A program made the position numbers and the translations under genes. The notes beneath the pieces are model-generated. The model did no database searches, had not been told where the DNA came from, and saw nothing but the letters and a program-made list of their open reading frames with translations. Below are positions 27,634-63,515 of a stretch of DNA of 64,000 nt, one piece after another (position 1 is the stretch's first letter; every line of letters starts with the position of its first letter). Location: contig QPMI01000627.1 of NCBI GenBank assembly GCA_004431415.1, positions 62,001 to 126,000 of the forward strand, read 5' to 3'. This DNA is from Cyanophora paradoxa CCMP329 (Eukaryota > Plantae > Glaucophyta).

Positions 27634-29739
27634 TTATGCGGCGCCGGTGTTGAAGACGGCCTGGGCGAGGGCGTAGTAGAGGGGGATGCCGATGGTGATG
27701 TTGAAGGGGAAGGTGATGGCGAGCGAGGTGGTGACGTAGTACGAGGGGTTGGCGTCGGGGATGGCGATGCGGACGGCCGCCGGCGCCGCGATGTACGAGG
27801 CCGAGGCGGCGAGGGCGGCGAGGACGGTGGAGCCGCCGACCGAGAGGCCGAACTGGTGGCCGATCAAGACGCCGAGCGAGCCGTTGATGATGGGCGCCAG
27901 GATGGCGAAGACGGCGAGCGAGGGGCCGACCGAGAGGAAGTCGCGGAAGCGGTTGCCGGCGATGAGGCCGAGCTCGAGCAGGAACATGAGGAGGATGCCC
28001 TGGAACGGCTGCACGAAGAAGGGCGAGACCTTCTTGAAGCCCTCCTCGCCGCAGACCCAGCCGATGATGAGGCCGCCGATGAGCAGGATGATCGACTTGC
28101 CGTAGAGCACGTCAGCGATGGCCTCCTTGAGGCGCTCCGACGACGATGTCTTCTTCTCCTCCGACGCGGCCGCCGCGCCGGTCGCCTGGTCCCCAATCAT
28201 CACCTGAGGGGGGCCGAGTCAGCCGCGGCCAAGGCGTGGAGGGGGGCAGGGCGGGGGCGGGGCGGGCCTGCTCAGACTTGGCGTCCATGGAGACGAGGGG
28301 GCCCGGGGAGAGCGACTCGACGGGGCGCGGGACGTACTCCTTCTCGGACACGTCCTCATCCTCCGGCTCGCCCTTGAGGTACGCGTACGTCAGCAGCGCG
28401 ATGATGATGCCTGCCGCCCCGCGTCAGACGAGCGCCGAACGCGCGGGGGATGCGGCGGGGGCGGACCGGGGATCTCGAGGAGGGTGAGGAGGGCGGGCAT
28501 GTACCCCTCGACGGAGACCTTGTTCAGCTCCATGAACGTGAGCGACGCGATGAACGTCACGGCCGACGTCGACGCGTAGTGGGCCGCCATCGCTGCGCGC
28601 GCGCCTCAGCGGGGGTACGGCGCGGGGCGGGGTAAGGGCAGGGGCGGGGCGGACCGCAGGCGTCCTCGAGGGAGAGCTTGAGCCAGTTCTTGAGGACGAA
28701 GAAGGTCCACGCCGGCGCGATGCAGCCGAGCAGCAGCGTGCCGAACGCCGGGCCCGCCAGCGTCGACAGGTCCGCCACTGCGCGCGCGCGGCCCGTCAGC
28801 GCCGGCGTCGAGGGGCGGGGGCGGGGCGGGGGGCACCGTTGGCGACGGCGACGCCACCCTTGAGGCCGAGGGCGAGGAGGAGGTAGATGGAGATGGACGA
28901 CTGGTAGCCGGCGGGGAAGGAGAGGTCCGAGCGAACGAAGGCGGCAATCGCGCCGAGGAAGAACGCCTGCCCCCGGCCCCGCGTCGGCCCCGGCCAGGCC
29001 CGGCCCGGCGCCCAGCGGCCGGCGGCGCTGCGCACCAGCACGGCGGGCGACTTGAGGTTGGCGGCCGCGAGGGCGGCCTGCGACGCCGGCGCGTCCGCGG
29101 CGAGGGTCAGCGACTGCGCGACGGTCTTCTCCGCCGCCGCCGAGAGGCTCGAGAGCGTGTTCACGTCCAGGAACTTGGACGCCGCGCCCGTCATCGACGG
29201 GATCTCGAGGCCCGCCGGCGCTGCCCAGGGAGGCAATCATTAGCCCCGTCCCGGCCCCGCGCGCGCGCGCGACGCCGCTCGGCCGGCGCACCATTGCCGC
29301 TCGCCTGGATGGTGCTGAGGAAGCGCTGGGCCGGGGCCGAGAGCACCGACTTCCTGCGCGCGCCCCGCGTCAGCCTCCCGCCCGGCCCGCATACGTCGCC
29401 CCGAGGCGGCGCGGGGAGGGCGCGGCGGGCCCTAGGCATGTCGACGCTCCGTCGACGTCTAGAGGAGCGGCCAAGGGTCGCGTACGCGCGCGCGACGGCC
29501 CCGATCCGGCGCGCGACGGCCGCGACGCTCCAGCCCGGGTTCGCCTAGGCCCTCCCTGGGCGCGGCGGAGCGGGCACGCACTTGCTGACGGCCTCGCCGG
29601 CGAGGAAAGAGCGGCCAAGGACGACCTTGCGGCTGGTGAGGCCGGTCGCGCGCGGCTGGACGGCGACGCGCGCGGCCCGGAGGACCGGCGCGGCCTGGGT
29701 CGACGCGGCGTGGGACGGGGTCGGAACGACGAACGCCAT
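27634..29739 (-). CDS. sbtA: SbtA-family sodium-dependent bicarbonate transporter with plastid transit peptide, copy A (8 exons)
   Basis: Family motifs SPAVLAFFLG..VRSDL, SIYLLLALGLKGG, AAHYASTSAVTF, LLEIPGII, KSIILLIGG, FLLELGLIAG, ASASYIAAPAAVRIAIPDANPSYYVTTSLAITFPFNITIGIPLY. N-terminal MAFVVPT...SFLAG...TIQA leader. Confidence 0.92.
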
Positions 29740-29935
29740 CTCTACTCTAGCTTCTCTGCTGACTGCCTAGAACGTCTGCCCGAACAGGTCTTTAGCCGCG
29801 CCTTTTACGCGGAATTATACGGCGACGGTCCAAGTATTGTCCCCTTTTACGACCCCGCGTTGCAACCTAGTCCATCGCCCTACCCCCCGAGTGGCCCCTT
29901 CGCTGGCCCCTCGCGGTCGTAGAGTCGCTACCGTT
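29740..29935 (-). promoter_or_regulatory. Upstream region of SbtA copy A, homologous to the Trx-B/SbtA-B intergenic promoter
   Basis: Reverse-complement similarity to ~41790-42010, including TTTTACG at 29803 and 29845 and GGAATTATA. Confidence 0.55.
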
Positions 29936-30349: not shown

Positions 30350-33138
30350 CTACATCTCGAGCCAGGCGCTCTCTTCCTCCGCCGCCGCCGCGCCCTCTAC
30401 TTCGCCTCCACCGCAGAAGTCCGCCTCGTGGGCCGCCGCCGCGAAAGACGCCGCCGCGGCGCCCTCGGCCAGCGTCGCGCCCCCCTCCCCCTCCTCCCCG
30501 CCCTCCTCGTCCTCCCCCTTCTTGGCGCCGCCGGAGCGCAGCCCCTCGAGCCGCTGCGGAACAGCTAAGCTTTAGGGGGCGCCCGGAAGAGCTGCTCGGC
30601 GAATCGAATTCGGATCAGGGACTCACGATGTCGGCGAACTCGCGGAGGGCCTCCGCCGTGCGCATGTCGTCGAAGCGCTCCGCGTCGTACTGGCCCCGCG
30701 CCGCCATCCGATGGTCAGACAGAGCCCAGCAGCTTCGAGGCTCAGGAGACGAGAGAGAGGCGGCCTAGGCCTAGGGCGCTCTGGAGGGTCTGACCTCGGG
30801 CCCGAAGGGGCGTGCCGCCACTCAAACTAAGCAAGGAGACGCGCTCTAACTCTTACTCTAAACCAGCGAAGGCTCGAGGGGGGCAGGCTCTAAACGAGCT
30901 GGGCGCGCGCGCGCGGGTCCCACCTTGTTGTCGATCACGTCGGGCGTCTTCTTCGTGAGGAACACCACGTAGGGCACCCTGCCCCCGTTCACGGCGCCGG
31001 TCAGAGGCCTCTGCCCGAGGGGGGTACGGGACGCGCACCCGTCGATGGGGTACCCCGCCAGCTCGCCGATCTGCTGCTCCACGGAGTTGATCCTGCCCGC
31101 CCCCCGTCCGTCAGGGCCGGCGAACGGGTCGGGGGCAAGGGCCAGGCCGTTATACGAAGCGCCGCTTAGAGGGGCGGTGACGAATGTCATGTTCCGACCC
31201 CCGGGCCCGGGGGCGGGGGCGGGGGGTAGGGGGGTAGGGGGTTCCGGGGGGCGCGCCTGGCGACGGGGATCTTGCCGGCGACCTCGCGGGCGTAGTCCTC
31301 GTACTCCGGCGCGAACTTGTTGCAGTGGCCTGCGCCCCGGCGGCGGAGGCCCGCCCAGGCTCAAGGCTGGGCGGAGGCCGGCTACAGGGCCGGCTGCGGT
31401 CTGGTGAGCGGGCCGCACCGCACTCGGTCCAGTACGCCTCCACAAACATCGCGTCTGCGGGGGGGCCGGGGCGCCCGGGCGGTCAGGCCGGGCCGCGCGG
31501 AGGGGGGCGGGGCGGGGCGGGGCCTCGGGAGCCAGGGGGCCCGTGGGGGTAGGGGTGCAGAAGGCGGGGGGCGGGCCCCGGCGGGCGAAGGGGGGCGCCC
31601 CCGCGGGCTCTGGTGGGCGGGCGGGCGGGTAGGGTGCGGCTGGAAGCGAAGGGAGAGGATCGGCGTGGGTACGAAACGAGGTAAGGGCGAGATAGGGAAG
31701 GCGAATCGGAAGTGTCGGAGGGGCGAAGCGAAGGGGGGCGGATGGCGGGAGAGCTCGGCGGTCGTCGAGGGGAACGATAGCTTGGGTGGGAGACAATTGG
31801 GTGGAGTAGGAGGGGCGGGGGAGGCGGGCGGGTCCCGGCTCGAGCCCCCTCTCTAGACAGGCCCGGGCCCCCTCGTGGGGTGGGGCGGGGCCTCGGGGGG
31901 TAGGGGCTCGGTGGGGCTAGGGAGTGAGAAGGCGGGGGGCGGGCCCCGGCGGGCGAAGAGGCGGGCGGCCCGGGTAGGGTGGCTTGGTTAGGAAATGAGA
32001 TAAAGGCGATATAGGGAAGGCGGAAGAGAAGGGTCGCAGGGGCGAAGGAGGCGGGACCCTAGCGCATGGCGGGAAAGCCCGGCGGGTGACGGGCGCACCG
32101 CCGGGGAGGTCGCCCTCCTCCTGCGCCGCGATGAGCGCCTCGAGGTCCGCCGCGCTCCCGAGCTCGATCACCTGCGCGCCGGGGGCTCAGCTAGGGGGGA
32201 GGCGGGAGGTGGAGCTCAGCTGAGGCCATCGAGGGAGGGCGGGGTGGGGGTGGGAAGGGGAGGGGGGGGGAAGGGCCGCGCCCGGCCTCCGTTGAGAGCT
32301 CAGACGAGGCCTTGCAGGGGCGTGGGGGTGGAGGCGGCTGCGAGCGCCCGTCCCTCCTTGTCGCCGTCTAGTACTAATGGAAGGCTCTCTGCCAGGCTCC
32401 GTTCGAGGTAATGAAAGCGCACGACCGCCATTACTACAACACCTAGAGGGCAAAGCTTCTACGCGTGTCCCCCGTATAAACTGGCGGCTGGCGCTTCTGG
32501 AAGTCTATGCTAGGCACCCTTCGAGGCCAATGGCTACAATGCCCGTGCACGTTTCTAGGGATCCCGGATTCGTTTTAGGCTTCCCTCGAGGCCTCTAGTT
32601 CCCCGAATAAACGAGAGCGCGCGCCCGCCCCGCCTCGACGGCGGCCTTCGCCTCCTCGATGTCGATCGTGGCCCCCCGCGCCGCCGCCTCGCTCGCCGTC
32701 TTCTCCTTCTGCGGGGGCGCGTCGGTTGGCGGTGTTGGAGCGCCTCTCCCTCTTATTCTCCAGGGCCGCTCTTCCCTGACAGACGCAGATCTCGAAACGC
32801 GTCTCTCCCATCTTTGGACGCGCGGAAAGCGTCTATGAGGGATCCCACTCGACGCGGCTAAGCTGGCGCTAGTTCTCCCCGCTACTATCCCAGAGGGGCG
32901 GGCGGGCGGGCGGGCGGGCGGGGCGCACGGCAGGGGCGCGGCGGTCGATGCCGCAGTTCTCGGCGATGTACTCCTTCAGCCCGTCGACCGTCCGGTCCCC
33001 CAGGTACTCTGTACCCGGCCCCGCCGCGCGCGCCTCAGCGGGACGGCCCGAGGGGCGGGGCGCGGCGGGGCTGGGCGGGGCGGGGCGGGGCGGCGGAGGC
33101 TCGGCGTGGAGAGCTAGCTAGCATTTGGGGGCGGCAGA

Positions 33139-33173
<35 letters not shown>

Positions 33174-33975
33174 ACCCTCAGTATCGAACTTGTAGTCCAC
33201 CTCCCCCGGCGTTTTCTGGCGCCCTCGGTCGGCCCGAGGGGCGGACAGCGCGGGGGGTACCGGCGCACCTTCTCCAGGAAGACGAACGAGGGGTACCCGT
33301 GGATGTCCTGGCCCCCGATGGTCGTGATGCCGGCCTCGGCAGCGTCTGCGGCCGCCCGCCCAAACGCCCGTCAGCGCTCCGCCGGCGGCCTACCCGCCCT
33401 CCCCAGAGAGGTCGCACCGATGCGAGCGATGACCATCTGCGGCGGGGCGGGGCGGGGCGGGGCGGGGCGACGCGTGCCGAGGCTAGGCGGGCGGAGGCAC
33501 GCGCAGGGGCGCTAGCTTCTATCGGCGAGCCCCTATGAACGCCTAGCTACGGCGCGGGCACGGCCGCAGTGCGCCCGAGCACCTTGCCCTTGACGCCGTC
33601 GGCGGCGGCGAGGCTCTCATAGACGGACTTGGCCTTCATGCAGTGCCTGCACCAGGAAGCGTAGCCCTCCACCATCAGGCAGTCTGCGGTCCGCCGCTAA
33701 GCCGCGGACCGAAGCTTCCGAAGTTCGCGGCGCCAACGGGCGCCGGGCTCAAGCCCGGGCTCTAGACGAGGGCGCCGGGCGCACCGCCGGGGAGCTCCCC
33801 ATCCTCGACCGCGACGAGGAGGTCCTCCAGCTCCTGCAGGCGAGTCAGCAGCGGCGGCTGGCGCGAGCCGAAGTTGCGGCGCGCCTTCGTTGCTATTCAG
33901 CTCTATGACGCGGCCCTCCGCGACGGCGCGCTTCGCCGCCGGCACATCGAAGTCTGTCAGCGGCTCTGACGACAT
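30350..33975 (-). CDS. Two-domain thioredoxin/PDI-like protein, copy A (apparent +1 nt at end of exon 1; possible pseudogene or assembly error)
   Basis: Exons colinear with copy B: WCRHC and ECGHC sites, IHGYPSFVF, acidic tail ending SAWLEM-TAG. Exon 1 ends AAC GAA G|gc versus AAC GAG|gc in copy B. Confidence 0.75.
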
Positions 33976-36110: not shown

Positions 36111-37373
36111 CTACGAGGACCGCGGAGTCCAAAATTGACGCAGGCGAAGATAAGCGGTGAAAAGAACTCTTTCGGGCTGCCGGTTTTTCACAACGTCAGG
36201 CATAAGAATATGCATTTGTGAAAGAACGAAAACGCTCGCCAGGGTCGCCCTTGCCATGGATGCATTCAGCGCTTCCTGCCCGAGGGCCGTCAGGGACGCG
36301 AAAGACGATTCACTTTGTGCTGGCGAGCGCGGACCTCGGCTTTCTTCTCCCGCTCCTGAACGTGCAACGCGTCAGCATCAGCGCCGGAAAGTCGATGCGC
36401 CTGGAAAGCGCGGACCTTGGCCTCCTTCTCCCGCTCCTAAACGTCGGAACGGGCATGATCAGCGTGGGCGCCACGCGCACGCGTGTGGAGAGGCCAATGC
36501 GATGCGCCGGCGAGCGCGGACCTCGGCTTTCTTTTCATTCTCCTGAACGTGCAACGCGTCAGCATCAGCGCCGGAAAGTTGATGCGCCTGGAAAGCGCGG
36601 ACCTTGGCCTCCTTCTCCCGCTCCTAAACGTCGGAACGGGCATGATCAGCGTGGGCGCCACGCGCACGCGTGTGGAGAGGCCAATGCGATGCGCCGGCGA
36701 GCGCGGACCTCGGCTTTCTTTTCATTCTCCTGAACGTGCAACGCGTCAGCATCAGCGCCGGAAAGTTGATGCGCCTGGAAAGCGCGGACCTTGGCCTCCT
36801 TCTCCCGCTCCTTAACGTCGGAACGGGCATGATTAGCGTGGGCGCCACGCGCACGCGTGTGGAGAGGCCAATGCGATGCGCCGGCGAGCGCGGACCTCGG
36901 CTTTCTTCTCCCGCTCCTGAACGTGCAACGCGTCAGCATCAGCGCCGGGAAAGTCGATGCGCCCGGAAAGCGCGGACCTTGACCTCCTTCTCCCGCCCCT
37001 GATCGTGGAAATCAGTGCTTAATCGACATTAAACCTGAAAGCACGAGAAGGCGAACCTTCAAGGCCTCTACTTCGGCCTAGCGCGCAGGGGGCATCAGCC
37101 GCAGTTGAAAGGCCGCGCTTGGCCGCAGACTTCACCTTAAGCTTTTCAATCAACGCCTGCTGATCGCCCGCGTCCACATTAGTGAAATCAAGCCAGGTAA
37201 GCAAGATGTGGTTACCTGATCAGAGCTCGCGTCCTGAGAGTTGCGCGCTTGTGCCTGCAAACGCATTGCTGACGATTGCGCTTGCGCCTGCCAGCGCAGA
37301 GGAAAGAACATACACGCTTATTTTCCTCAAGATCTGTGCTCGGTGGGATCGCCGACGAGTTGGGCGGCGCCAT
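36111..37373 (-). CDS. Orphan charged-helix/coiled-coil protein encoded by an array of 21-nt microexons (5' and 3' ends uncertain)
   Basis: Phase-0 exons, each bounded by AG and GT, most with branch-like CTGAC/CTGAT/CTAAT upstream: MAPPNSSAIPPSTDLEENKR|AQARNSQDASSDQ|(Q)ALIEKLK|AEVEALK|GREKEVK|EREKKAE|EREKEAK|ENEKKAE|EREKEAK|ENEKKAE|EREKEAK|EREKKAE|EALNASMARATL... Confidence 0.7.
36320..36998. repeat. 187-bp tandem repeat (~3.6 copies); each unit is two microexons plus two introns
   Basis: Period 187 (exons at 36416/36603/36790 and 36335/36522/36709/36896); 21+60+21+85 = 187. Confidence 0.95.
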
Positions 37374-38392: not shown

Positions 38393-38616
38393 GCCCCGGC
38401 GGACCCGACCTTACTCCGATTTAATTGCAAAAAGATCCTACAAATGCATCGGCGCCGGCGCGCCCCTACATCTCGAGCCAGGCGCTCTCCTCCTCCGCCG
38501 CGGGCGCCCCCGGCGGACTCGACCTTACTCCGATCTAATTGCGAAAAGATCCTACAAATGCATCGGCGCCGGCGCGCCCCTACATCTCGAGCCAGGCGCT
38601 CTCCTCCTCCGCCGCG
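38393..38616. repeat. ~120-bp tandem duplication of the Trx-B stop codon and proximal 3' UTR
   Basis: gaccttactccgat..aattgc..aaagatcctacaaatgcatcggcgccggcgcgcccctacatctcgagccaggcgctctcctcctccgccgcgg occurs twice. Confidence 0.85.
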
Positions 38617-41600
38617 GCGCCCTCTTCTTCACCGCCGCGGCAGAAGTCCGCCTCGTGGCCCGCCGCCGCGAAGGACGCCTCCGCGACGCCCTCGGCCAGC
38701 GCCGCGCCCCCCTCCTCCTCCTTCTCGCCCTCGTCCTCCTCCTTGGCGCCGCCCGAGCGCAGACCCTCGAGCCGCTGCGGAACAGAACAGCTTAGGAAGG
38801 CCGCGGCCGGAAGAGCTGCTCGGCGAATTCGAATTCGAATCGGTGACTCACGATGTCGGCGAAGTCGCGGAGGGCGTCCGCCGTGCGCATGTCGTCGAAG
38901 CGCTCCGCGTCGTACTGGCCCCGCGCCGCCATCCGATGATCAGATAGAGCTCAGGAGCTCAGGAGACGCGATAGAAGCAGTCTCAGGAGCTCAGGAGACG
39001 CGATAGAAGCAGCCTCGGGCTTTTCTGAGCTAAGAGGCGCGTCCCGGTCCGGCGAAGGATAGAGGGGGGTACGCCCTAACAGAGCGCGGCGCGCGCGGGT
39101 CCCACCTTGTTGTCGATCACGTCAGGCGTCTTCTTCGTGAGGAACACAACGTAGGGCACCCTAGTTCAGGGCACCGGTCAGGGGCCTCGCCCCGGGGGAG
39201 GGGGGGGTACGGGAAGCGCACCCGTCGATGGGGTACCCCGCCAGCTCGCCGATCTGGTGCTCCACGGAGTTGATCCTGCCCGCCCCCCGTCCGTCGGGGC
39301 CGGGGCACGGATCGGGGGCGAGGGCCCGGTCGGTTGGAGAAGCCCCCCTCTCCCTTCTTTCTACAGCTATGCCTTGCTCCGACCCCCGGGCCCCGGGCGG
39401 GGCGGGAGACTCTGAGTGCAAGGGCGCGCCTGGCGACGGGGATCTTGCCGGCGACCTCGCGGGCGTAGTCCTCGTACTCCGGCGCGAACTTGTTGCAGTG
39501 GCCTGCGCACCGCCCGCCCGCTCAGAGGCTGGCTACAGGGCGCGCGGCGGTCCGGGGCGCGGGCCGCACCGCACTCAGTCCAGTACGCCTCCACGAACAT
39601 CGCGTCTGCGGGGCGGGCCCCGGGGCGCAGGCGCCGATCAGGGGGGGCGGAACCCCGGGGAGAAGGGGGTCGGTGGGGCCAAGAGGAGGTCGGGCCCGAG
39701 GCGAAGAGAGATGCGGGGGTAGGGACAGTGGCTTGGGAAGGAGGCGATCGGGCGGGGCAAGGGCGCGAGGGGCGGGGGAGGAGGGCGGGCCCCGGCGGGC
39801 GAAGCGAAGGGGGGCGGTTGGCAGGGGAACGAGTGAAAGGAGCGGGAGGCGGGGGAGGCGGGGCGGGGCGGGGCGGGGCTAGCGATGGGGCTCGAGCCCA
39901 GCTTGCTAGCCCGAGCCGGGCTCGAGCCGGCACCCCTCGAGCCGCGCGCCCCGGCTCGAGCCCCGTCTCTAGCTGGCCCCGCCCGGGCGGGCGCACCGCC
40001 GGGGAGCCTGCCCTCCTCCTGCGCCGCGATGAGCGCTTCCAGATCCGCCGCGCTCCCCAGCTCGATCACCTGAGCGCTGAGAGCTCAGCCGGGGCCTTGG
40101 AAGGGGGCTGGAGGGGAGGTGGGGGGGAGGCGGGTGGGTGGGAGGGAGGGGAGGGCCGCGCCCGGCCTCCGCCTCCGTTGAGAGCTCAACCGTGGCTTTT
40201 GGAAGAGCGTGGGAAGGAGGCGGGTGGGAGCGCCCGTCCGGCCTTGTCGTCGTCGCCGTCTAGTACTAATAGAAGTCTAAGGTTCTCTCTAGCGTGTCCC
40301 CCGAATAAACGAGAGCGCGCGCCCGCCCCGCCTCGACGGCGGCCTTCGCCTCCTCGATGTCGATCGTGGCCCCCCGCGCCGCCGCCTCGCTCGCCGTCTT
40401 CTCCTTCTGCGGGGGCGCGTCGGTTGGCGGTGTTGGAGCGCCTCTCCCTCTTATTCTCCAGGGCCGCTCTTCCCTGACAGACGCAGATCTCGAAACGCGT
40501 CTCTCCCATCTTTGGACGCGCGGAAAGCGTCTATGAGGGATCCCACTCGACGCGGCTAAGCTGGCGCTAGTTCTCCCCGCTACTATCCCAGAGGGGCGGG
40601 CGGGCGGGCGGGCGGGCGGGGCGCACGGCAGGGGCGCGGCGGTCGATGCCGCAGTTCTCGGCGATGTACTCCTTCAGCCCGTCGACCGTCCGGTCCCCCA
40701 GGTACTCTGTACCCCGCCCCGCCGCGCGCGTCTCAGTGGGGCGGCCTGAGGGGCGGGGCGCGGCGGGGCAGGGCGGCGGAGGCGGCGTGGAGAGCTAGAT
40801 AGCTAGCAATCGGGGGTGGCAGAGGCAGCGGCGACCGGCGGCGGCGGCGCACCCTCGGTGTCGAACTTGTAGTCGACCTCCCCCGGGGTTTTCTGGCGTC
40901 CTCCTTCGGCCCGAGGTGGGCGGGCAGCGCGGGGGGTACCGGCGCACCTTCTCCAGGAAGACGAACGAGGGGTACCCGTGGATGTCCTGGCCCCCGATGG
41001 TCGCGATGCCGGCCTCTGCGGCGTCTGCGGCCGCCCGCCCGGGCGAGCGCCCGTCAGCGCTCCGCCGCCCGCCTACCCGCCCGCCCCAGAGAGGTCGCAC
41101 CGATGCGAGCGATGACCATCTGCGGTGGGGCGGGGCGGGGCGGGGCGGGGCGGGGCGGGGCGGGGCGGGGCGGGGCGGGACGGCGCGTCAGCGCGGGCGA
41201 GGCTTGGCGGGCGAAGACACCGCGCGCAGGGGCGCTAGCTTTTACCGGCGAGCCCCTATGAATCGCGGCCAGCTAGCTACGGCGCGGGCGGGGCCGCAGT
41301 GCGCCCGAGCACCTTGCCCTTGACGCCGTCGGCGGCTGCCAGGCCCTCGTACACGGGCTTTGCCTTCATGCAGTGCCTGCACCAGGAAGCGTAGCCCTCG
41401 ACCATCAGGCAGTCTGCGGCCCCGCCGCTAAGCCGCGGAGCCGAAGCTTTCCGAAGTTCGCGGCGCCAACGGACGCCGGGTTCAAGCCGGCGCTCTAGCT
41501 GAGGGCGCCGGGCGCACCGCCGGGGAGCTCTCCGTCCTCAACCGCGACGAGTAGGTCCTCCAGCTCCTGCAGGCGAGTCAGCAGCGGCGGCTGGCGCGAG

Positions 41601-41707
41601 CCGAAGTTGCGGCGCGCCTCGTTACTCTTCAGCTCGATGACGCGGCCCTCCTCGACGGCGCGCTTCGCCGCCGGCACATCGAAGTCTGTCAGCGGCTCCG
41701 ACGACAT
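38580..41707 (-). CDS. Two-domain thioredoxin/PDI-like protein, copy B (intact); no signal peptide or KDEL
   Basis: Spliced: MSSEPLTDF..VIELKSNEELEDLL..LPGDCLMVEGYASWCRHCMKAKPVYE..MVIARIDAAE..IHGYPSFVFLEK..EYLGDRTVDGLKEYI..VIELGSAADLEAL..LPGDAMFVEAYWTECGHCNKFAPEYE..IPVARINSVE..IDGVPYVVF..RTADALRDF..acidic tail SAWLEM*. Confidence 0.85.
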
Positions 41708-42010
41708 AGCGGCTGCGGGCGCGGCGGGCGCGGCGGTTAGCTCGAATTCGAAGTGCTTATACCGTGGCTGCTAGCTCGGCGCACCGTGGCACCGGCAGCG
41801 AGCACGAGGGCGAGCAAGGGTCACTCGGGGGGTAGAGGCGATGGGCCAGCTTGCAACACCGGGGTCGTAAAAGGCAACAATACTTGGAACGTCGCCGTAT
41901 AATTCCGCGTAAAACGCCACGGGTAATATAATTCCACGCTCGTAAAAAGCCGCGGCTAAGGAGCTGTTCAGTCAGACGTTTAGGCAGTCAGCAGAGAAGC
42001 TAGAGTAGAG
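41708..42010. promoter_or_regulatory. Putative bidirectional promoter between thioredoxin-B and SbtA-B
   Basis: 303 bp between divergent ATGs; AT-richer than flanks; CGTAAAA at 41866, 41908 and 41941; TATAATTCC at 41898 and 41927. Confidence 0.6.
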
Positions 42011-44136
42011 ATGGCGTTCGTCGTTCCGACCCCGTCCCACGCCGCGTCGACCCAGGCCGCGCCGGTCCTCCGGGCCGCGCGCGTCGCCGTCCAGCCGCGC
42101 GCGACCGGCCTCACCAGCCGCAAGGTCGTCCTAGGCCGCTCTTTCCTCGCCGGCGAGGCCGTCAGCAAGTGCGTGCCCGCTCCGCCGCGCCCGGGGACCA
42201 GCCTAGGCGAACCCGGGCTGGAGCGTCGCGGCCGTCGCGCGCCGGATCGGGGCCGTCGCGCGCGCGTACGCGACCCTTGGCCGCTTCTCTAGACGTCGAC
42301 GGAGCGTCGACGCGCGCCTACGGCCCGCCGCGCCCTCCCGGCCCCGCGCGCCGCTTCGGGGCCCGTACGTATACGCGGGCGGGAGGCTGACGCGGGTCGC
42401 GCGCAGGAAGTCGGTGCTCTCGGCCCCGGCCCAGCGCTTCCTCAGCACCATCCAGGCGAGCGGCAATGGTGCGCCGGCCGAGCGGCGTCGCGCGCGCGCG
42501 CGCGGGGCCGGGACGGGGCTAATGATTGCCTCCCTGGGCAGCGCCGGCGGGCCTCGAGATCCCGTCGATGACGGGCGCGGCGTCCAAGTTCCTGGACGTG
42601 AACACGCTCTCGAGCCTCTCGGCGGCGGCGGAGAAGACCGTCGCGCAGTCGCTGACCCTCGCCGCGGACGCGCCGGCGTCGCAGGCCGCCCTCGCGGCCG
42701 CCAACCTCAAGTCGCCTGCCGTCCTGGTGCGCAGCGCCGCCGGCCGCCCGGCGCCGCGCCGCGCCTTGCCGGGGCCGACGCGGGGCCGGGGGCAGGCGTT
42801 CTTCCTCGGCGCGATTGCGGCCTTCGTCCGCTCGGACCTCTCCTTCCCCGCCGGCTACCAGTCGTCCATCTCCATCTACCTCCTCCTCGCCCTCGGCCTC
42901 AAGGGTGGCGTCGCCGTCGCCAACGGTGCCCCCCGCCCCGCCCCTGCCCCTCGACGCCGGCGCTGACGGGCCGCGCGCGCGCAGTGGCGGACCTGTCGAC
43001 GCTGGCGGGCCCGGCGTTCGGCACGCTGCTGCTCGGCTGCATCGCCCCGGCGTGGACCTTCTTCGTCCTCAAGAACTGGCTCAAGCTCTCCCTCGAGGAC
43101 GCCTGCGGTCCGCCCCGCCCCTGCCCTTACCCCGCCCCGCGCCGTACCCCCGCTGAGGCGCGCGCGCAGCGATGGCGGCCCACTACGCGTCGACGTCGGC
43201 CGTGACGTTCATCGCGTCGCTCACGTTCATGGAGCTGAACAAGGTCTCCGTCGAGGGGTACATGCCCGCCCTCCTCACCCTCCTCGAGATCCCCGGTCCG
43301 CCCCCGCCGCATCCCCCGCGCGTTCGGCGCTCGTCTGACGCGGGGCGGCAGGCATCATCATCGCGCTGCTGACGTACGCGTACCTCAAGGGCGAGCCGGA
43401 GGATGAGGACGTGTCCGAGAAGGAGTACGTCCCGCGCCCCGTCGAGTCGCTCTCCCCGGGCCCCCTCGTCTCCATGGACGCCAAGTCTGAGCAGGCCCGC
43501 CCCGCCCCCCCCCCCCCCCCCCCCCCCCGGCCCGCCTTGGCCGCGGCTGACTCGGCCCCCCCTCAGGTGATGATTGGGGACCAGGCGACCGGAGCGGCGG
43601 CCGCGTCGGAGGAGAAGAAGACGTCGTCGTCGGAGCGCCTCAAGGAGGCCATCGCTGACGTGCTCTACGGCAAGTCGATCATCCTGCTCATCGGCGGCCT
43701 CATCATCGGCTGGGTCTGCGGCGAGGAGGGCTTCAAGAAGGTCTCGCCCTTCTTCGTGCAGCCCTTCCAGGGCATCCTCCTCATGTTCCTGCTCGAGCTC
43801 GGCCTCATCGCCGGCAACCGCTTCCGCGACTTCCTCTCGGTCGGCCCCTCGCTCGCCGTCTTCGCCATCCTGGCGCCCATCATCAACGGCTCGCTCGGCG
43901 TCTTGATCGGCCACCAGTTCGGCCTCTCGGTCGGCGGCTCCACCGTCCTCGCCGCCCTCGCCGCCTCGGCCTCGTACATCGCGGCGCCGGCGGCCGTCCG
44001 CATCGCCATCCCCGACGCCAACCCCTCGTACTACGTCACCACCTCGCTCGCCATCACCTTCCCCTTCAACATCACCATCGGCATCCCCCTCTACTACGCC
44101 CTCGCCCAGGCCGTCTTCAACAGCGGCGCCGCATAA
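42011..44136 (+). CDS. sbtA: SbtA-family sodium-dependent bicarbonate transporter with plastid transit peptide, copy B (8 exons)
   Basis: Inverted, near-identical copy of 27634-29739 with the same seven introns (last has a GC donor at 43495). C-terminus VFNSGAA versus VFNTGAA in copy A. Confidence 0.92.
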
Positions 44137-44429: not shown

Positions 44430-44870
44430 GGAACGCGGAATCGACGCGTTGGAATGGGAGAGGGAGGGACTAGGTGCGTTGCAATTGGTAGGACTGGAAT
44501 GGCGCAGAGAAGGCGCCGGCGTCGACAGTGGCGCGACGTCAGCGCGGAACGCGGAATCGACGCGTTGGAATGGGAGAGGGAGGGACTAGGTGCGTTGCAA
44601 TTGGTAGGACTGGAATGGCGCAGAGAAGGCGCCGGCGTCGACAGTGGCGCGGCGTCAGCGCGGAACGCGGAATCGACGCGTTGGAATGGGAGAGGGAGGG
44701 ACTAGGTGCGTTGCAATTGGTAGGACTGGAATGGCGCAGAGAAGGCGCCGGCGTCGACAGTGGCGCGGCGTCAGCGCGGAACGCGGAATCGACGCGTTGG
44801 AATGGGAGAGGGAGGGACTGAGTGCGTTGGTGGGACTTGAATGGACCAGAGCAGGCGCCGGCGTTAGCGC
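44430..44870. repeat. 116-bp tandem repeat (~3.7 copies) between the convergent SbtA-B and TPGS2 3' ends
   Basis: Unit ggaacgcggaatcgacgcgttggaatgggagagggagggactaggtgcgttgcaattggtaggactggaatggcgcagagaaggcgccggcgtcgacagtggcgcggcgtcagcgc. Confidence 0.95.
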
Positions 44871-47184: not shown

Positions 47185-49870
47185 GTTCCGATCATTCGTC
47201 TGTGCTGCGCGTCCGCGTCGGCGTGGACAGTCAGCAGGTCGTGTTGGCACAGTGCGGCGGCCAGGCTGGCGCTCAGAACTGAGCTCCCCAATGGGGGTAC
47301 GCACTCTCCGACGGGCAGTTACCTTGCTGCTCGTCAATGCGATCACGGTAGCGCTTCAGGCGCTCGTCGCGTTCGACAAGGAGACGAGGCGAGGCTTTTT
47401 TCCTGATTCAAAACGTGCGCCGACGCCCTTAGAGCGAAAGGGTCAACTACGCATTAGTCGACCTGGCGCGCAGTCGGGCGGCGCCGCCTCACACCCGAAG
47501 CGATCTCCCGCCGTCTTTGCTGTCGTGTGGTCGTCGTCGGTCGACTAGTCCGACGGCACTGCGGCAGCTTTGGTCTCCGTCGAATCTCCGTAAACCAGCG
47601 ATGTGCAGCGGCGCGGGGCTTCGGCCGCTCGTTGCGATTCCCGTTGTCGGCAAGGCCGCTCGATCCTCTACACCCGACGGCACCGCCAAGCCAAACATCC
47701 TTATCACAAATGTGAAATCCATTTCGACCATTCGGCCGGCGGAGCGGGGTTGCACCCCGACGCACCAACCGCATCCGTCCCTAGCCCCAGACACTGTTGA
47801 GATCCACGCCATCCACGACTCCTGCCGCCAGGTCCGTCTCGGCGCACGTGTTCGCAAGTGTTCGCAAGCTCGAAAATTTGATCTCCCGCAACCTTTGCAG
47901 ACGGACCTGCTATCCTCCCCAGGCGCCCTTTGGTTCGCCCTGGCATCGTCCGAGAACGACCGGAGATCGCCCTCGCCGCTCGCGATGCCAACGGCAACCA
48001 AAGAATCCAGAGATCTGGGGTGGGCCTTATCCTTTGACCGCCCGGACCCGTCTCCGGAGCGGGAGCGGCCTTCGGCTCCACTGCCTTTCATCGACATCGC
48101 CGACCGATCGGTCGTCTCCCCGCCGCCCCCTTTGCACCCGCTGCTTCGGCCCGTTCCTCGCCGGCCGCCCGTTACGCCGCTTGCGACCCGCGCGCTGCGA
48201 CCCATCGGTGTCGAATCTGCTCGAGTCATCACACGAGTCATTACGCAACCCACGTGCGGCTTCCATGCCCGCCCCGTTCGTGCCGCGCCGTCTAACCGCG
48301 ACACCGCCGCTCGCAGGATCCGGCGGGTCCCCGGCCCCAGTATCATGTGCGAGATTCGATATTCGCTTGGACCGACCCCGCTACCGTCCCCGCTGACGTT
48401 ATCACCCGCGCAGCGCCAAGCGGGGGCGCCCCGTCGTCAAGCTCGCCATCCCGAAGGCTTTCCTCGGTCCCCGGCCCCTCTGCTTCTCCCCCACCATCGG
48501 TTCGACCCGCCCTCGCCCTCGCCCCCGCCGCGCTCTGCGCTCCGCTTTCGCCGACACAGCGCGCGTTCGCAGAGCGGAGGATCGATCAACTCCTCATCGA
48601 CGACATGGGCGCCCCTCTGACCGTGTAGCCCCCCGATGCCTTCCTTCCGTCCGACGTGCCGGGCGAGTCCCCAACTTTTTTTCGTTGTCCGACGTGCCGG
48701 GCGAGTCCCCGACTTTTTTCGTCGTGCCGAACACTTTTTTCCCCTCCTGTACTGGGCCCGCGAGTCGTGTACAGATCTAGACCCTGCTCGCCGGCCTAAG
48801 ATGCTTTTTTCCCGACCCTTCTTTCAATGTACCCCGAGGTCCAGCGCCCGCTGGCTTTGCCCGCTCTTTCTCCTCTCAGACCTCGCCTTCTGTTGTGACC
48901 CCATTGCCTGTACTTTGCTTCCCGGCCGCGAGCTGGCTGCAGTGTGAGCCATGCTCCTGGCCGACATTTGATGCAGTTACATGCTCTACAGCCAGCTGAT
49001 CAGATAACATTCTTTGTAACCTCATTCTAGCTCTCCTCTTTGGCAGTTAGCGCGGCTCTTGCCTCCGTGCGGGCGCCCGCTGGTATTGAGTCTCTTCTAG
49101 TTCTCCATGTTCAAGGACTTTGGTTTCCCTCGATCCCCCTGCCCCTTCGGCTTTCGCCCCTAGTGCCTAGTCCCGGCATTCATGAACGGTCCGATCCGAC
49201 CCGTGTTAGTCACGTGATCTCGATGATCGTTTATGGTTGGTAGTTTCAGTTCGCAGTAGTGAAAGCAGTTTGATTTAGCTTATTTGCTTCTCGCATTCAA
49301 TGATTTGCCCATCTTGTTACATATACTGTACTACACTGTGAACAGTGAACACTAGTTTAAGATCTGTGTGTGGAATCGATTGGTCTTCGATTCGATAGGC
49401 TGAAACATCACGACGGAGTCAGACGGACAGCTCTGCAGCTGACAGTTTTACTGATTCGCGGATGCAAGATCCGTGAAACGACCGTAGGACTGACAACGCG
49501 CCGCAGTGATGATCATGAGCCGTTAAGCGATATGCATGCGCATATGGTAATTAGCAAGCACTGAACCAGAGCTCGAGGCCTGCAGCCGCTGAGCTGAGCT
49601 CATGCATCACGGCAATACTAGCAGACCGCGCCCGGCCCTGTGCAAGATCGGCAAGTGCGGGCCGCGCGCGGAGGTGCAAGGGGGGGTACTGGTACACATT
49701 GCAGGGTACTTAGGGTGTGTGTGTGTGGGAGGGGGGGGGGGGGGGGGGGGGAGGGCAGAGAGGCAAGGCGGGCGGCCGGGCGAGGCGGGCGGGGTCGCGA
49801 GGCGGGCAGGTGGGGTGGCGTCGCGGGCGGCGGCATCAGGCAGGCAGGCAGGCGAAGGCGGCGGCGGGCG

Positions 49871-50345
49871 GGGAAGCGGGCGGAGGGGCAGGTGGCGCCG
49901 GGCCCTGCGCATAGCCTGCACATACGCAGAGCTGAGGCGTCAGCTCGCCCCGGACAGCGGCCGTGCGGGGGCGGGGCCCAGCGGGGGCGGCCGGGCCAGG
50001 TGCGCGGCAGCAGCGGCGGGCGAACCTGGAGTCGACGACGCTGAAGCAGCCGGCGAGGCGGCGGGCGAGGAAGCGGGCGGAGGGGCAAGTGGCGCCGGGC
50101 CCTGCGCATAGCCTGCACATACGCAGAGCTGAGGCGTCAGCTCGCCCCGGACAGCGGCCGTGCGGGGCGGGGCCCAGCGGGGCGGCCGGGCCAGGTGCGC
50201 GGCAGCAGCGGCGGAGCGAACCTGGAGTCGACGACGCTGAGGCAGCCGGCAGGGCGGCGGCGGGGAAGCGGGCGGAGGGGCAGGTGGCGCCGGGCCCTGC
50301 GCATAGCCTGCGCAGGGCCGAGGCGTCAGCTCGCCCCGGACAGCC
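49871..50345. repeat. ~195-bp tandem repeat (~2.5 copies), possibly an exon+intron unit of a minus-strand gene
   Basis: ggaagcgggcggaggggcaggtggcgccgggccctgcgcatagcctgc..gaggcgtcagctcgccccggacagc recurs at ~49871, ~50069 and ~50264. Confidence 0.85.
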
Positions 50346-52322
50346 GCGGCGCAGGGGCGGGGCCTAGCCCGACGCGACGTACTAGGAGCAGCTGCGAATG
50401 CTGCGACGCCGCGGCCACCACACTCTGCTACGGAACGCCGGCCGCGGTTCAAGCCACGCATACGTGGGGCCGAGGCGTGCAAGTGGCGACCCGCCCCGTG
50501 CTTGAACCGCGCTTGAAGAGCTTGACAACATCGAGCTGGAGTCTGCTCGATCATGAATCGGAGTCCATCAGAAACCGAGAGCGTTGGCAAAACGCCGCGT
50601 CCGCGGGCGCGCACACAGCCGGCGTCGCGGCGTCTCGGGCGCCTCCTTCCTGCACTCTCGCGGCGCTCTCCGCCACCAGGAACGGCTGTGCCCGCATTCG
50701 CCACCAGGAGCGCATCCGCGGCTGTTCCCGCACGGTGTAGGTGTCGACGCCGAGGCCGCAGCCGGAAGCGCACCGGAACGCGACGTTGCGGGCGCGCCGC
50801 TCCGGCGCGCGCTCCGCATGCGGATGCTCGGCCCCGCGACCTCGACCTCTGAGCCGGGCTCTAGCATGTGTACCCAGCAATCGGCTCCCGACTCGAAGGA
50901 GCGCTTTTTTTCGGCGCCCGGTACAACAGGTACTTGAGGCGGCCTAGCGCGCCACGCGCCGCTTCTCGAGCCCAGGCATGTATGACAGAGTTTGTAGAGC
51001 GCATTGAGAGCATTCAGGAGCACGTGGTCCGGCGCATATAGCAATAGCAGGTGAGGAGCGGATTCGCGTACCCCGACCTGGAGAGAAAGTAGGTAGCGGG
51101 CTCCTGCCCGCTGGGCGCCTCTCCGGCTGCCGCGAATCGCCTCGGCGGTGCCTTTAGCCCTCCTCTAGCTGGTTAGCCGCGCGTCCGTTAGGAATCCGCT
51201 CCGTGGGTCGGTTCGGCGAGCTACTCCAGCGGACACCAGCGGCGGCTTCAGCAGCTGCTCTCTCGTTCAGCCCAAGCACTTCTCTGCGGCAGCGATCGGC
51301 CGCCCGCGGCTATGGGGCCGGCGACCTGCGCTGCGCCCGCGCAGATGATCGTCGGTCGTGTGAGTGCACGCCCGCGTCGCGGCCGTGGGCGTCGCGGCCG
51401 CACAGATGCTTGGATTCCTGGCGAGGCGACGTGCTTCTGAGCACTCGGGCGGCCCGGGGCCTCCCAACCCCCGCCGCAGCGGACTCCGCGCGCGCGCGCG
51501 CCAGCTGGAGGAGGTATCTCTCGGCCGAGGAGCACAGGTCGCCGGCTGCGGCCGGCGATGCTGTGCGCCCGCCGGTTTTCACCCGGGCTCTCACGGGCTC
51601 CGGTTTCCGGCCCTCCCTGGGGTTAGTCGGCCTTGCTCTCTTAGTGCGCTTCTTCCCTGCCAAATTGAGGGCTATAGTTCAGGCTCAGCCGCTTCGACCT
51701 CATCCTCGCTTATACATCGGTCCTCTCTGTAGGCGCCCTTGTCCTGAGGGGGGTTATAGTAGCTCTGCTCTGCTTCGGCTCTCTAGGCAGGTGTAGGCAG
51801 TGCTTCTAGGCAGGTATAGGCCCCTTTCTCCAGTACAATAGCTCCACCCGGTCCGATGTCCGAAAGGCTTGTTCCCGTAGGCTCATCTCTCGACTTGACA
51901 CAGATGGACACTGCAGTCATATCCCTAGCCATTTGTCTTGGTGTGTGCGAATTCATTTGTATAGCAGGTGAGGAGCGGCTTCGACATGTTTGCGCAGCCC
52001 CGCCCCTGCATTTTTTTTCGCCGCTCGCAGCGGCTACGATGCGATCACAGCTATACGAGAGCGCATGCAAAGAATCTCATCTTACAAAAATTACTAACAC
52101 AGAAAGTACGCCGCACCAATTCACCAGGGGAGCAAGGGAGGGGGTACCCCCCCTTGCAATGATGCATTCGTCAGGAATCTATCTGTCTGTCTACCTTGAA
52201 ACAACGGGCGGCTCCGCGGCCGAGCTCCAGCAGCGACCCCGAGCCCGCCCGCACACAGTTGCTGGCGAGATGCCGGCCGCCGGCCGCCGGCCAACCGCGC
52301 GCGCGCCGCGGCCGACCGCCGG

Positions 52323-61064: not shown

Positions 61065-63515
61065 TCAGCAGTACCAGAAGCCGTCGGCGGCGGGGTCCGC
61101 CTGCTCCCCCCGCATCTGCTCCACCTGCTCGATCGGGTTCTCCTTCTCGAAGCTGTACCCCTGGAAGTGCTCGTCCACAGAGCCCGAGAGGCTGTGCGCC
61201 GGCGAGTCCGTCGGCGGCATCGCCGTGAACTCGTTGTCGAACATGGACGTCACGTCGCCGTACAGGCGCGTGTCCGGCCGGAACGGAGTCTCCAGCTCTT
61301 TCTGGATGAGGGCCAGCCAGTCCACGTTGGCGAAGAACGGGTGCTGCAAAAGAAGAACGCGGTTCGAATCCGGGCGGAGCCGCCCGGAACAGAGGGGTAC
61401 GCACCATCATGATGTCGTACGCGCCGCCGGGGCCGCTGCCGAGCCGCTTCTCGGGCTCCTTCACTAGCAGCTGCGGGGCGCGGGGGTACGTCAGACGTAG
61501 AAGCGGCGGCGGGGGTACGGGGTCCGGCGGACCGCGCGGCAGAGCGACTTGGCCTCCTCGGAGAGGTACCCCGGGAAGCGCGGCTCCTCGTGCAAAATGG
61601 CCTCCTGCACCTCGGCGCGCGTCTTCCGCGCGAACGGCGGCTGCGAGGGCGAGGCTCGAACGCGGGACGGAGGTACGGCTCCCGAAATTCAAAAAGCGCG
61701 CACGAAGCCCGTGAGCATCTCGTAGACGAGGCAGCCGAAGGACCACCAGTCGATGTTCTTGCCGTACCCCCGCCGGATGAGGACGCAGGGCGCCATGTAT
61801 TCGAGGGTCCCGCAGAAGGTCTGCGTGCCCCCGTTCGCCTCGTCGACCTCCTTCGCCAGTCCGAAGTCCGTGAGGCGCGCGTGGCCCTCGGCTGCGGCGC
61901 GGACGCACGCGCTCGGGTCAGCCGAGGCGCGCGCGCGCGGCGGAGGGGAGGCGGCGAAAGGGCACCGTCGAGGAGGACGTTCTCGGGCTTGAGGTCGCGG
62001 TAGACGATGCCGAGCTTGTGGAGATGGCCCAGCGCGAGGCAGATCTCCGCCGCGTAGTACTGGGCGACGGGCTCCGGGAAGAATTTCTCCCGCTTGAGGT
62101 GGAAGAAGAGCTCGCCGCCGACGAGAAAGTCGAGGATGAGGTACAGCTTCCCGTTCGTCTGGAAGGCGTAGTGCAGCTTCACGATGAACGGGTGCTGCAC
62201 GTCGCTCAGGATCGCCCGCTCCGTCACCGTACCCCTGATCTGCCGCGACTTGACGACGGCGTCCTTGCGGATCACCCTGCGCGGGGCTCAGCCGAGGCTG
62301 CGCGCGCGTGCGCGGGAGCGGAGCGCCGCACTTCATCGCGTAGAGCTCCTTCGTGTCCCGCTTGCGGACGAGGAGGACTTTGGCGAACGAGCCGCGGCCC
62401 AGCACCTTCAGGATCTGCGGGGCGCGGGTCGGAGGCGCGCTTCGGCGCACCGTGGCGAAGCCGAGCCGCGACGAACGGCGTACCTCGAAGTCTTCCAGCA
62501 TCGTTCTCTTCGGCGGCTGCACTGCAGCTGGGCTCGGCTCTGGCGCCCTGGACGACGGCTGCTCGTCCTCCTGGTCGTACGCGGCGAGGCAGAGCGTAGA
62601 GACGGCGCGCTTCATGCGCGGGGCCTCCTCCACAGGCGCAATCTCCGGCGATTTCACGAAATCCGAACGACGCCGCAGACATTCCGCGGGCGTGAGCGAT
62701 GCCGGCGGCGACGGAATGACCTTCTGCGCCTTCCCGTGGATTTCGCCCCTGCGCGCGCAACGGCCGGTTCGCATTCGACGGCGAGTTCCGACCACAGGGG
62801 GCAACGCACAGTCCGATGGACATGTAGCGTTCGCGAACTACTGTCGTCGGAGCGATCTGCAGCGTCTTATCCAACTCCCGGTGGCCGTGGTGGCCCAAGT
62901 GCCCGTTCGAGTGGATCACCGTGTGCTGCAAGTGGTGCACTGCGCCAAGGGCGCTCAGAGCGATAAACGAGATACTTGGAGCCGTGCCGAACCTGAGCTA
63001 TCGTACAGAGTCAAGCAATCCGCATCCTCCGCTGCATGCTCCATATCATGCTGGATCTCGTCCAGGCTGAACATGTTCTTGGCATTCGCTGGCTCTGCGC
63101 CGCGGTCGGAGAGCGTCGCCAAAGGCGTTGCGGAAGCGCGCACGCTCTTGCCGGGGCAGCCTGACGTGCGCCGGCGAATCTGGGACATCGTTGGTGTCGC
63201 CGCCATCAGAGCCCGGGCGAAGCGCTGGAAGGTCGTCACCACGCGAGGGCGGAAGCTCGATATCGATTAGCTTTACGCCTCCAACACCTGAATCGAAGGC
63301 GCCCGCATGAGCACCGGCGCGGAAACCGCGCTGCGGCAACGTGGCGACAGATGCTGTCCCAGAACTTGGCCGTTCGGGCTCGCGTGTGCGAACGCACCCT
63401 CAATAAGCTCCTTCAGCTCGTTCATGCTCTGCTTCCTGGACTTGACCGCGGCGGCCACGTCGGCCACGGAGGGACCAAGCCCATCCGCCTCGAAGAAGAG
63501 CTCATCGTCTCCCAT
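61065..63515 (-). CDS. AGC-family Ser/Thr kinase, ribosomal S6 kinase-like (start approximate)
   Basis: [69 protein letters not shown]; AGC tail with PTDSP turn motif and FQGYSF hydrophobic motif. Confidence 0.92.

Follow-up and report, generated by a model that had tools for sequence, protein, structure and literature searches.

The window analysed here, a 64,000-nucleotide stretch of Cyanophora paradoxa DNA, holds a gene of the SbtA family. It raises the question of whether a glaucophyte alga carries such a transporter in its plastid, of which type it is and where it came from. It is not settled by what means glaucophytes concentrate CO2 at the central body, and a plastid-targeted SbtA is a specific candidate. 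Reviews place SbtA in Bacteria and Archaea only. The literature open to searching, with few subscription journals and without the early Cyanophora CO2 studies, contained no report of a eukaryotic SbtA; a passing mention is possible. The C. paradoxa genome paper names no bicarbonate transporter, and SbtA-family genes are named neither in it nor in the accessible parts of its supplements. A low-CO2-induced 'putative bicarbonate transporter' of C. paradoxa was reportedly described by Burey et al. 2007 and is said to be LCIA-like. The algal plastid inorganic carbon transporters LCIA/NAR1.2 (formate-nitrite family) and bestrophin-like BST1-3 are likewise nuclear-encoded and plastid-targeted, with a proposed role in HCO3- supply to the pyrenoid. 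Their folds are unrelated to that of SbtA, and they are channels, not elevator-type secondary carriers.

Gene structure and the two copies

The C. paradoxa gene at 42011-44136 on the forward strand is divided by seven introns into eight exons of 158, 62, 185, 130, 123, 126, 143 and 570 nt. The CDS of 1497 nt encodes 498 residues. The features of this copy and of a second one on the opposite strand are as follows.

41799..42010, forward strand: upstream region common to copy B (29740-29919), AT-rich, with a repeated CGTAAAA element
42011..44136, forward strand: SbtA-family copy A (public model tig00021435_g21416), 8 exons, 498 aa
42011..42168, forward strand: exon 1, residues 1-52 of the predicted cyanelle transit peptide; Phe3
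42169..42406, forward strand: intron 1, GT-AG, 238 nt; the public model puts a false extra exon inside it
42407..42468, forward strand: exon 2, end of the transit peptide; probable cleavage after Ala70 (codon end 42458)
42542..42726, forward strand: exon 3, Ala-rich mature extension of ~55 residues, then start of TM1
42796..42925, forward strand: exon 4, TM1-TM2, Sbt_1 profile 6-46
42985..43107, forward strand: exon 5, TM3, Sbt_1 profile 53-87, weak alone
43170..43295, forward strand: exon 6, broken TM4 helix with crossover motif, Ser114 equivalent retained, and start of TM5
43352..43494, forward strand: exon 7, end of TM5, then long acidic central loop
43495..43566, forward strand: intron 7, GC-AG; 64 nt in copy B, missing from the spliced contig L001
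43567..44136, forward strand: exon 8, TM6-TM10, TM9 crossover motif and stop codon
27634..29739, reverse strand: SbtA-family copy B (public model tig00021435_g21408), inverted relative to copy A
29739-29582, 29353-29292, 29220-29036, 28966-28837, 28777-28655, 28592-28467, 28410-28268 and 28203-27634, reverse strand: exons of copy B

No internal stop occurs in any exon of copy A when each is translated separately in its inherited frame. Intron 7 is of the GC-AG type and the other six are GT-AG. All seven have CAG at the 3' end and a branch-point-like CTGAC, CTAAT, CTGAG or CCGAC. The first-pass annotation had counted seven spliceosomal introns, and their bounds can now be set. In the intron-free contig L001 (run SRR33659066), presumably from a related Cyanophora, the eight exons align end to end at 87–94% identity per exon. 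Since L001 has no intron sequence between them, all seven junctions are confirmed, the GC-AG one included. These junctions also show a splicing error at intron 1 in the public models. The 515-aa models g21416 and g21408 agree with the two copies except at the exon 1-2 junction, where they contain an extra exon that is not present in L001, and they were rejected. This false exon (within 42169-42406 and 29354-29581) distorts the predicted transit peptide. Two intron retentions that would be in frame in copy A were rejected. Retention of intron 3 would split TM1, and retention of intron 7 would cause a frameshift in copy B; neither intron is present in L001. Bacterial contamination was rejected because the introns are host-type and GC3 is 0.98. 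Compared with L001, exons 4-6 show 23 synonymous codon differences and one replacement, and the leader exons show 27 and 10, respectively, so the gene is under purifying selection.

Copy B at 27634-29739, already noted from the sequence, is intact and its exon lengths equal those of copy A. The CDS differs at 10 nt, of which nine are synonymous and one changes an amino acid. The exons are 99.3% identical, a similarity that would also be expected if copy B were an assembly artefact or an unmerged allele. That reading is very improbable given the opposite orientation, the differing flanks, introns that diverge by 3.6% with eight indel events, and the excess of synonymous over replacement changes. 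Copies A and B look like real paralogues, both intact.

Family, type and origin

The Pfam search of the spliced gene was performed per exon, and whole-protein comparisons used the database proteins P0243, P0126, P0121, P0311 and P0411. Four of the eight exons match Sbt_1 (PF05982) in collinear order, with exons 4, 5, 6 and 8 covering 6-46, 53-87, 90-130 and 143-308 of the profile. Exons 4, 6 and 8 score 48.8, 41.1 and 221.3 bits, while exon 5 alone is below the cut-off of 27 bits (the Pfam gathering threshold). The best sequence match in the PDB is Synechocystis SbtA (E 7e-32), the only solved relative. The AlphaFold2 model of P0126, a relative's protein, has ten helices with TM4 and TM9 broken, and pLDDT is mostly above 80 over the helices. 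It displays the 5+5 inverted repeat with the unwound TM4/TM9 crossover. A Foldseek search with this model returns SbtA for the top five matches, at 25–26% identity and with a TM-score of up to 0.89 on the target. Membership in the SbtA family, as first proposed, is borne out by both the profile and the fold.

The type of SbtA had to be revised. The HCO3- site proposed for SbtA1 by docking consists of S114, Y140, S324 and S327 (PMC8352866). In the algal protein S114 and S324 are retained, Y140 is replaced by Leu and S327 by Ala, and D325 becomes Tyr. With Synechocystis PCC 6803 SbtA1 (Slr1512; PDB 7CYE, 7EGL) it shares the 5+5 fold, the TM4/TM9 crossover, a long central loop and residues Ser114, Ala320, Ser322 and Ser324, but the identity is 26% and the near-invariant Gly111 is Ala in Cyanophora. 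Na+ coupling and SbtB control, features of SbtA1, would be conjectural in the algal protein. The first-pass reading of a cyanobacterial Na+/HCO3- symporter is therefore not supported; the gene is short SbtA2-like. In a motif survey against 119 cyanobacterial-type matches, Tyr and Ala in TM9 are typical of the short branch as a whole, the cyanobacterial short-type included, and the short-type crossover motifs of cyanobacterial SbtA2 are present in the algal proteins. The sampled short cyanobacterial homologues also share Leu for Y140, besides Tyr and Ala for D325 and S327. The assayed WH5701 SbtA2 is taken by us to group with these sampled proteins. The Cyanophora central loop is acidic and ~58 residues long, compared with roughly 4–16 in relatives. 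NCBIfam holds no model for short SbtA-type proteins.

Cyanobacterial SbtA2 (Rourke et al. 2026, PMC13187645) belongs to Sbt_1 as well and has about 25% identity to SbtA1. It transports HCO3- in E. coli with K0.5 near 150 uM, is not Na+-driven and is stimulated by Cl- (PMC13187645). Because the algal protein belongs to the short SbtA2-like type, obligatory Na+ coupling is doubtful. The Na+ ligands of SbtA1 are main-chain oxygens (PMC8352866), so Na+ dependence is not decidable from sequence. The bacterial genes are paired with a P-II-like gene, whereas no P-II-like match, and no sbtB beside the gene, was found in the 64-kb window. The algal gene also differs in being nuclear and spliced, in encoding a transit peptide and in forming a clade apart from the sampled cyanobacterial homologues. 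We describe its product as an Sbt_1 member that would work like SbtA, yet is neither SbtA1 nor inside the sampled cyanobacterial short-type clade.

The closest sequences are found elsewhere among bacteria. The best 80 GTDB loci belong to Verrucomicrobiota, Bacteroidota, Gemmatimonadota, Planctomycetota and others, with no cyanobacteria among them. The short permeases of these four phyla share the crossover motifs of the algal protein and 50–55% identity over the core, versus 39–45% for 11 cyanobacterial short-type proteins. They differ in being ~320 aa long and leaderless with a short central loop, and in lying in an operon with a P-II gene and often a beta-carbonic anhydrase, purK/purE or LysR gene. 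The glaucophyte proteins form one clade, with support of 99 in a 111-protein tree, where the divergent paralogue falls within it, and of 100/100 in a 52-protein tree, which left out six long-branch bacterial rows, this paralogue and many other rows. Several well-supported branches lie between the glaucophyte and cyanobacterial clades in both trees. Monophyly of the glaucophyte and cyanobacterial short-type proteins is rejected by the AU test (p-AU 1.2e-16), and neither the trees nor this test place the algal proteins within the cyanobacterial short-type clade. SbtA1 is in neither tree. The branch to the algal clade is long, at 0.66 changes per site.

As the algal proteins do not group with the sampled cyanobacterial homologues in the AU test, horizontal transfer from a non-cyanobacterial bacterium, and not plastid inheritance, appears to be the best reading. 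Endosymbiotic gene transfer from the plastid's cyanobacterial ancestor, with later loss in red and green algae, would be the usual source of a plastid-targeted glaucophyte protein. Short-type SbtA is present in cyanobacteria, and Gloeomargarita and the named alpha-cyanobacteria lie outside our sample. Such descent is nevertheless quite improbable in view of the identities, the best 80 loci and the AU test, and among the matches listed none comes from Gloeochaete, Glaucocystis, red or green algae.

Homologues in other eukaryotes, which the first-pass annotation had proposed to look for, were found in one genus. Transcriptomes of Cyanoptyche gloeocystis contain orthologues ~70% identical over the core, with at least two paralogues (P0121/P0001 and P0124); they are transcribed and their leaders are similar to those of Cyanophora. 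The tree indicates that Cyanoptyche duplicated the gene independently. No further eukaryote is among the matches listed; for Gloeochaete and Glaucocystis the absence is weak evidence, as it rests on transcriptomes. Two metagenome scans gave no matches. Plastid and mitochondrial trees place Cyanophora as sister to Cyanoptyche (PMC6330054), so a single acquisition in their common ancestor fits this distribution. A third and divergent C. paradoxa paralogue, P0311 (tig00021357_g20787), lies on a different contig and has 36% identity. It carries Phe early, the segment ahead of TM1 is very acidic and the TM4 motif is altered, and part of TM1 is apparently missing from its public model.

The leader and the membrane of residence

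The copy A leader starts with MAFVV, with Phe at position 3, and is rich in Ala, Ser and Thr. At residues 67-71 it reads TIQA-S, with Ala70 followed by Ser71. In a relative's protein, residues 1-70 contain nine basic residues and one acidic. The ~70-aa leader of the first-pass annotation is thus confirmed, with one refinement: ~55 more residues separate Ala70/Ser71 from TM1, placing ~126 residues ahead of the transporter. Cyanelle transit peptides that have been verified contain Phe early on, are Ala/Ser-rich with a median length of 63, carry Ala or Arg at position -1 and leave a mature protein beginning with Ser or Ala; several of the precursors begin almost identically to copy A (PMC4510345). 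The leader agrees with them in each respect, having Phe in the first 10 residues, an Ala/Ser-rich composition, a length within ~60-80 aa and Ala at -1, and this supports the glaucophyte transit peptide that had been suggested. All glaucophyte homologues with an intact start, including two full-length Cyanoptyche proteins and the third paralogue, have Phe in the first seven residues. Among 571 homologues, an N-terminal extension is credible only in the glaucophyte proteins. The sole other one, P0296, an apparent second eukaryote, was rejected because it looks bacterial, its start probably mis-called. The protein has no match in the cyanelle TAILS and proteome supplements, whose tables hold mainly peptides and older gene ids (PMC4510345). 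Plastid import of the precursor is strongly suggested by the leader.

The inner envelope is favored as the membrane of residence, as it derives from the membrane in which SbtA ordinarily operates, and as glaucophyte thylakoids do not traverse the pyrenoid (PMC6704402). The Cyanoptyche precursors contain a second block between transit peptide and extension, basic, then hydrophobic and ending in ALA. This Sec-type-signal-like block occupies residues 90-118 of P0121 (L083) and 88-116 of P0124 (L002). Its resemblance to a Sec-type transfer signal would fit sorting to the thylakoid, where the protein would move HCO3- between stroma and lumen. We consider this improbable. The block is missing in the Cyanophora leader, the pyrenoid is not crossed by thylakoids, and the N-terminus of SbtA is outside, so a Sec-type-like signal would suit insertion into the inner envelope equally.

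Substrate, role and copy number

Genes beside the bacterial kin point to the substrate. A P-II/SbtB-like gene is present at 58 of the 80 best GTDB loci, in several phyla, a beta-carbonic anhydrase on the same strand at 27, a LysR regulator at 28 and purK with purE at 15; as the loci are related to one another, the counts cannot be taken as independent. P0005, the closest in path length in the 111-protein tree, is encoded between a beta-carbonic anhydrase and a P-II gene. In Verrucomicrobiota, short sbtA often adjoins purK-purE (L014:1924-2472, L030:3768-5491 and 13 other loci). PurK consumes HCO3-, and the linkage suggests bicarbonate supply to purine synthesis in heterotrophs. The close kin come mostly from mainly heterotrophic phyla, and their role is likely anaplerotic supply. 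This adjacency of P-II, beta-carbonic anhydrase and purK/purE genes supports bicarbonate as the substrate. Taken with the family, it makes HCO3- the probable substrate of the algal protein and renders the plastid bicarbonate transporter of the first-pass annotation plausible.

We know of no assay on proteins of the clade nearest to the algal one, and a literature search found none for short SbtA-like permeases of this bacterial clade. The family name does not fix the substrate, and the protein may by drift have come to carry a different small anion or to serve in ion exchange. The long branch, the change of Gly111 to Ala and the very divergent third paralogue g20787 are in line with such drift. 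Some family members are also inactive in E. coli, where uptake was absent for two SbtA2 proteins of Prochlorococcus and for an 'SbtA-like' protein of Labrenzia. We give drift a low probability, as both crossover motifs, the Gly111 change aside, are nearly identical to those of bacterial kin adjoining carbonic anhydrase, and the literature yielded no SbtA-family member with another substrate.

With a probability of about 0.58, we favor a cyanelle-targeted, short (SbtA2-like) bicarbonate carrier that was acquired by transfer and is imported, trimmed and assembled as an inner-envelope trimer feeding the central body. A single acquisition from a non-cyanobacterial bacterium would probably have taken place in the ancestor of Cyanophora and Cyanoptyche, followed by gain of introns and transit peptide and then by duplication. 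The precursor would be imported via the Phe-dependent TOC/TIC route and lose its 70-aa leader. The ten-helix 5+5 protein would then form a trimer in the inner envelope membrane, and its long acidic loop would face the stroma. HCO3- would be carried from periplasm to stroma by elevator motion of the TM4/TM9 crossover core, a mechanism described for SbtA (PMC8352866), and would feed the central body filled with Rubisco. Coupling to Na+ is probably not obligatory.

The weakest part of this proposal is that the carrier would actively accumulate HCO3- and take part in concentrating carbon. The proposal's main rival is housekeeping: a constitutive envelope carrier of HCO3- for pH balance or for carboxylases in the stroma (ACCase, purine synthesis), and not a carbon-concentrating pump. 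The closest kin, mostly of heterotrophic phyla and beside purK/purE and beta-carbonic anhydrase, would suit such a carrier. Duplication also affects the thioredoxin-like neighbor described below, so additional copies do not have to mean demand. However, Cyanoptyche duplicated the gene independently and C. paradoxa has three copies, and the heterotrophic neighbors reflect the donor's use, not the alga's. On balance, we consider the housekeeping role unlikely.

More tentatively, the favored carrier may be the first eukaryotic SbtA in a fuller sense, namely an active, SbtB-independent HCO3- pump of the plastid inner envelope, taken from a heterotrophic bacterium and replacing uptake systems lost by the cyanobacterial endosymbiont. 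It would be induced by low CO2 and drive carbon concentration around the central body. This extended version is possible, and we do not regard it as the probable one. If it is true, chloroplast engineering would find a ready-made solution in the leader with its mature extension. A plastid-targeted SbtA from a third-party bacterium would in any event clearly exemplify how a plastid transporter can be supplied from outside the endosymbiosis. SbtA has been installed in plant chloroplast envelopes over years with little uptake, and targeting, orientation and energization are in question. SbtA1 and SbtA2 engineered into tobacco chloroplast envelopes likewise combine SbtA with a plastid-targeting leader and brought little or no gain, whereas the algal version is natural and under purifying selection. 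A plastid-selected SbtA bears on these three questions and offers a natural model for placing such pumps in crop chloroplasts. The existing E. coli assay can test the candidate directly.

Dosage had been suggested as the reason for two copies. The separate duplication in Cyanoptyche is compatible with selection for dosage, a possible cause of the two C. paradoxa copies. A spliced thioredoxin-like gene with two CxxC regions (38600-41707, reverse strand) lies head to head with copy A, the start codons ~300 bp apart, and 41799-42010 is upstream of both. A duplicate of this gene, 78–88% identical, lies between the SbtA copies (30350-33975, reverse strand). Because this neighbor is locally duplicated as well, local rearrangement may account for the SbtA copies. 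Of six CGTAAAA occurrences in the window, five fall within the two SbtA upstream regions (41866-41947; 29803-29851), and copy A has three through a 35-bp duplication. The element is possibly a cis-element, with an enrichment just marginally above chance.

A tandem array of ~22 copies of a 50-bp unit, each with TTAGGG, lies at 15973-17109. Short tandem arrays with units of 116, 187, 197 and 114 bp are located at 44430-44829, 36322-37000, 49860-50368 and 38394-38622, respectively, and the 116-bp array begins 300 bp past the copy A stop. Near the end of the window, an ORF at 61250-62275 on the reverse strand encodes a partial protein kinase domain.
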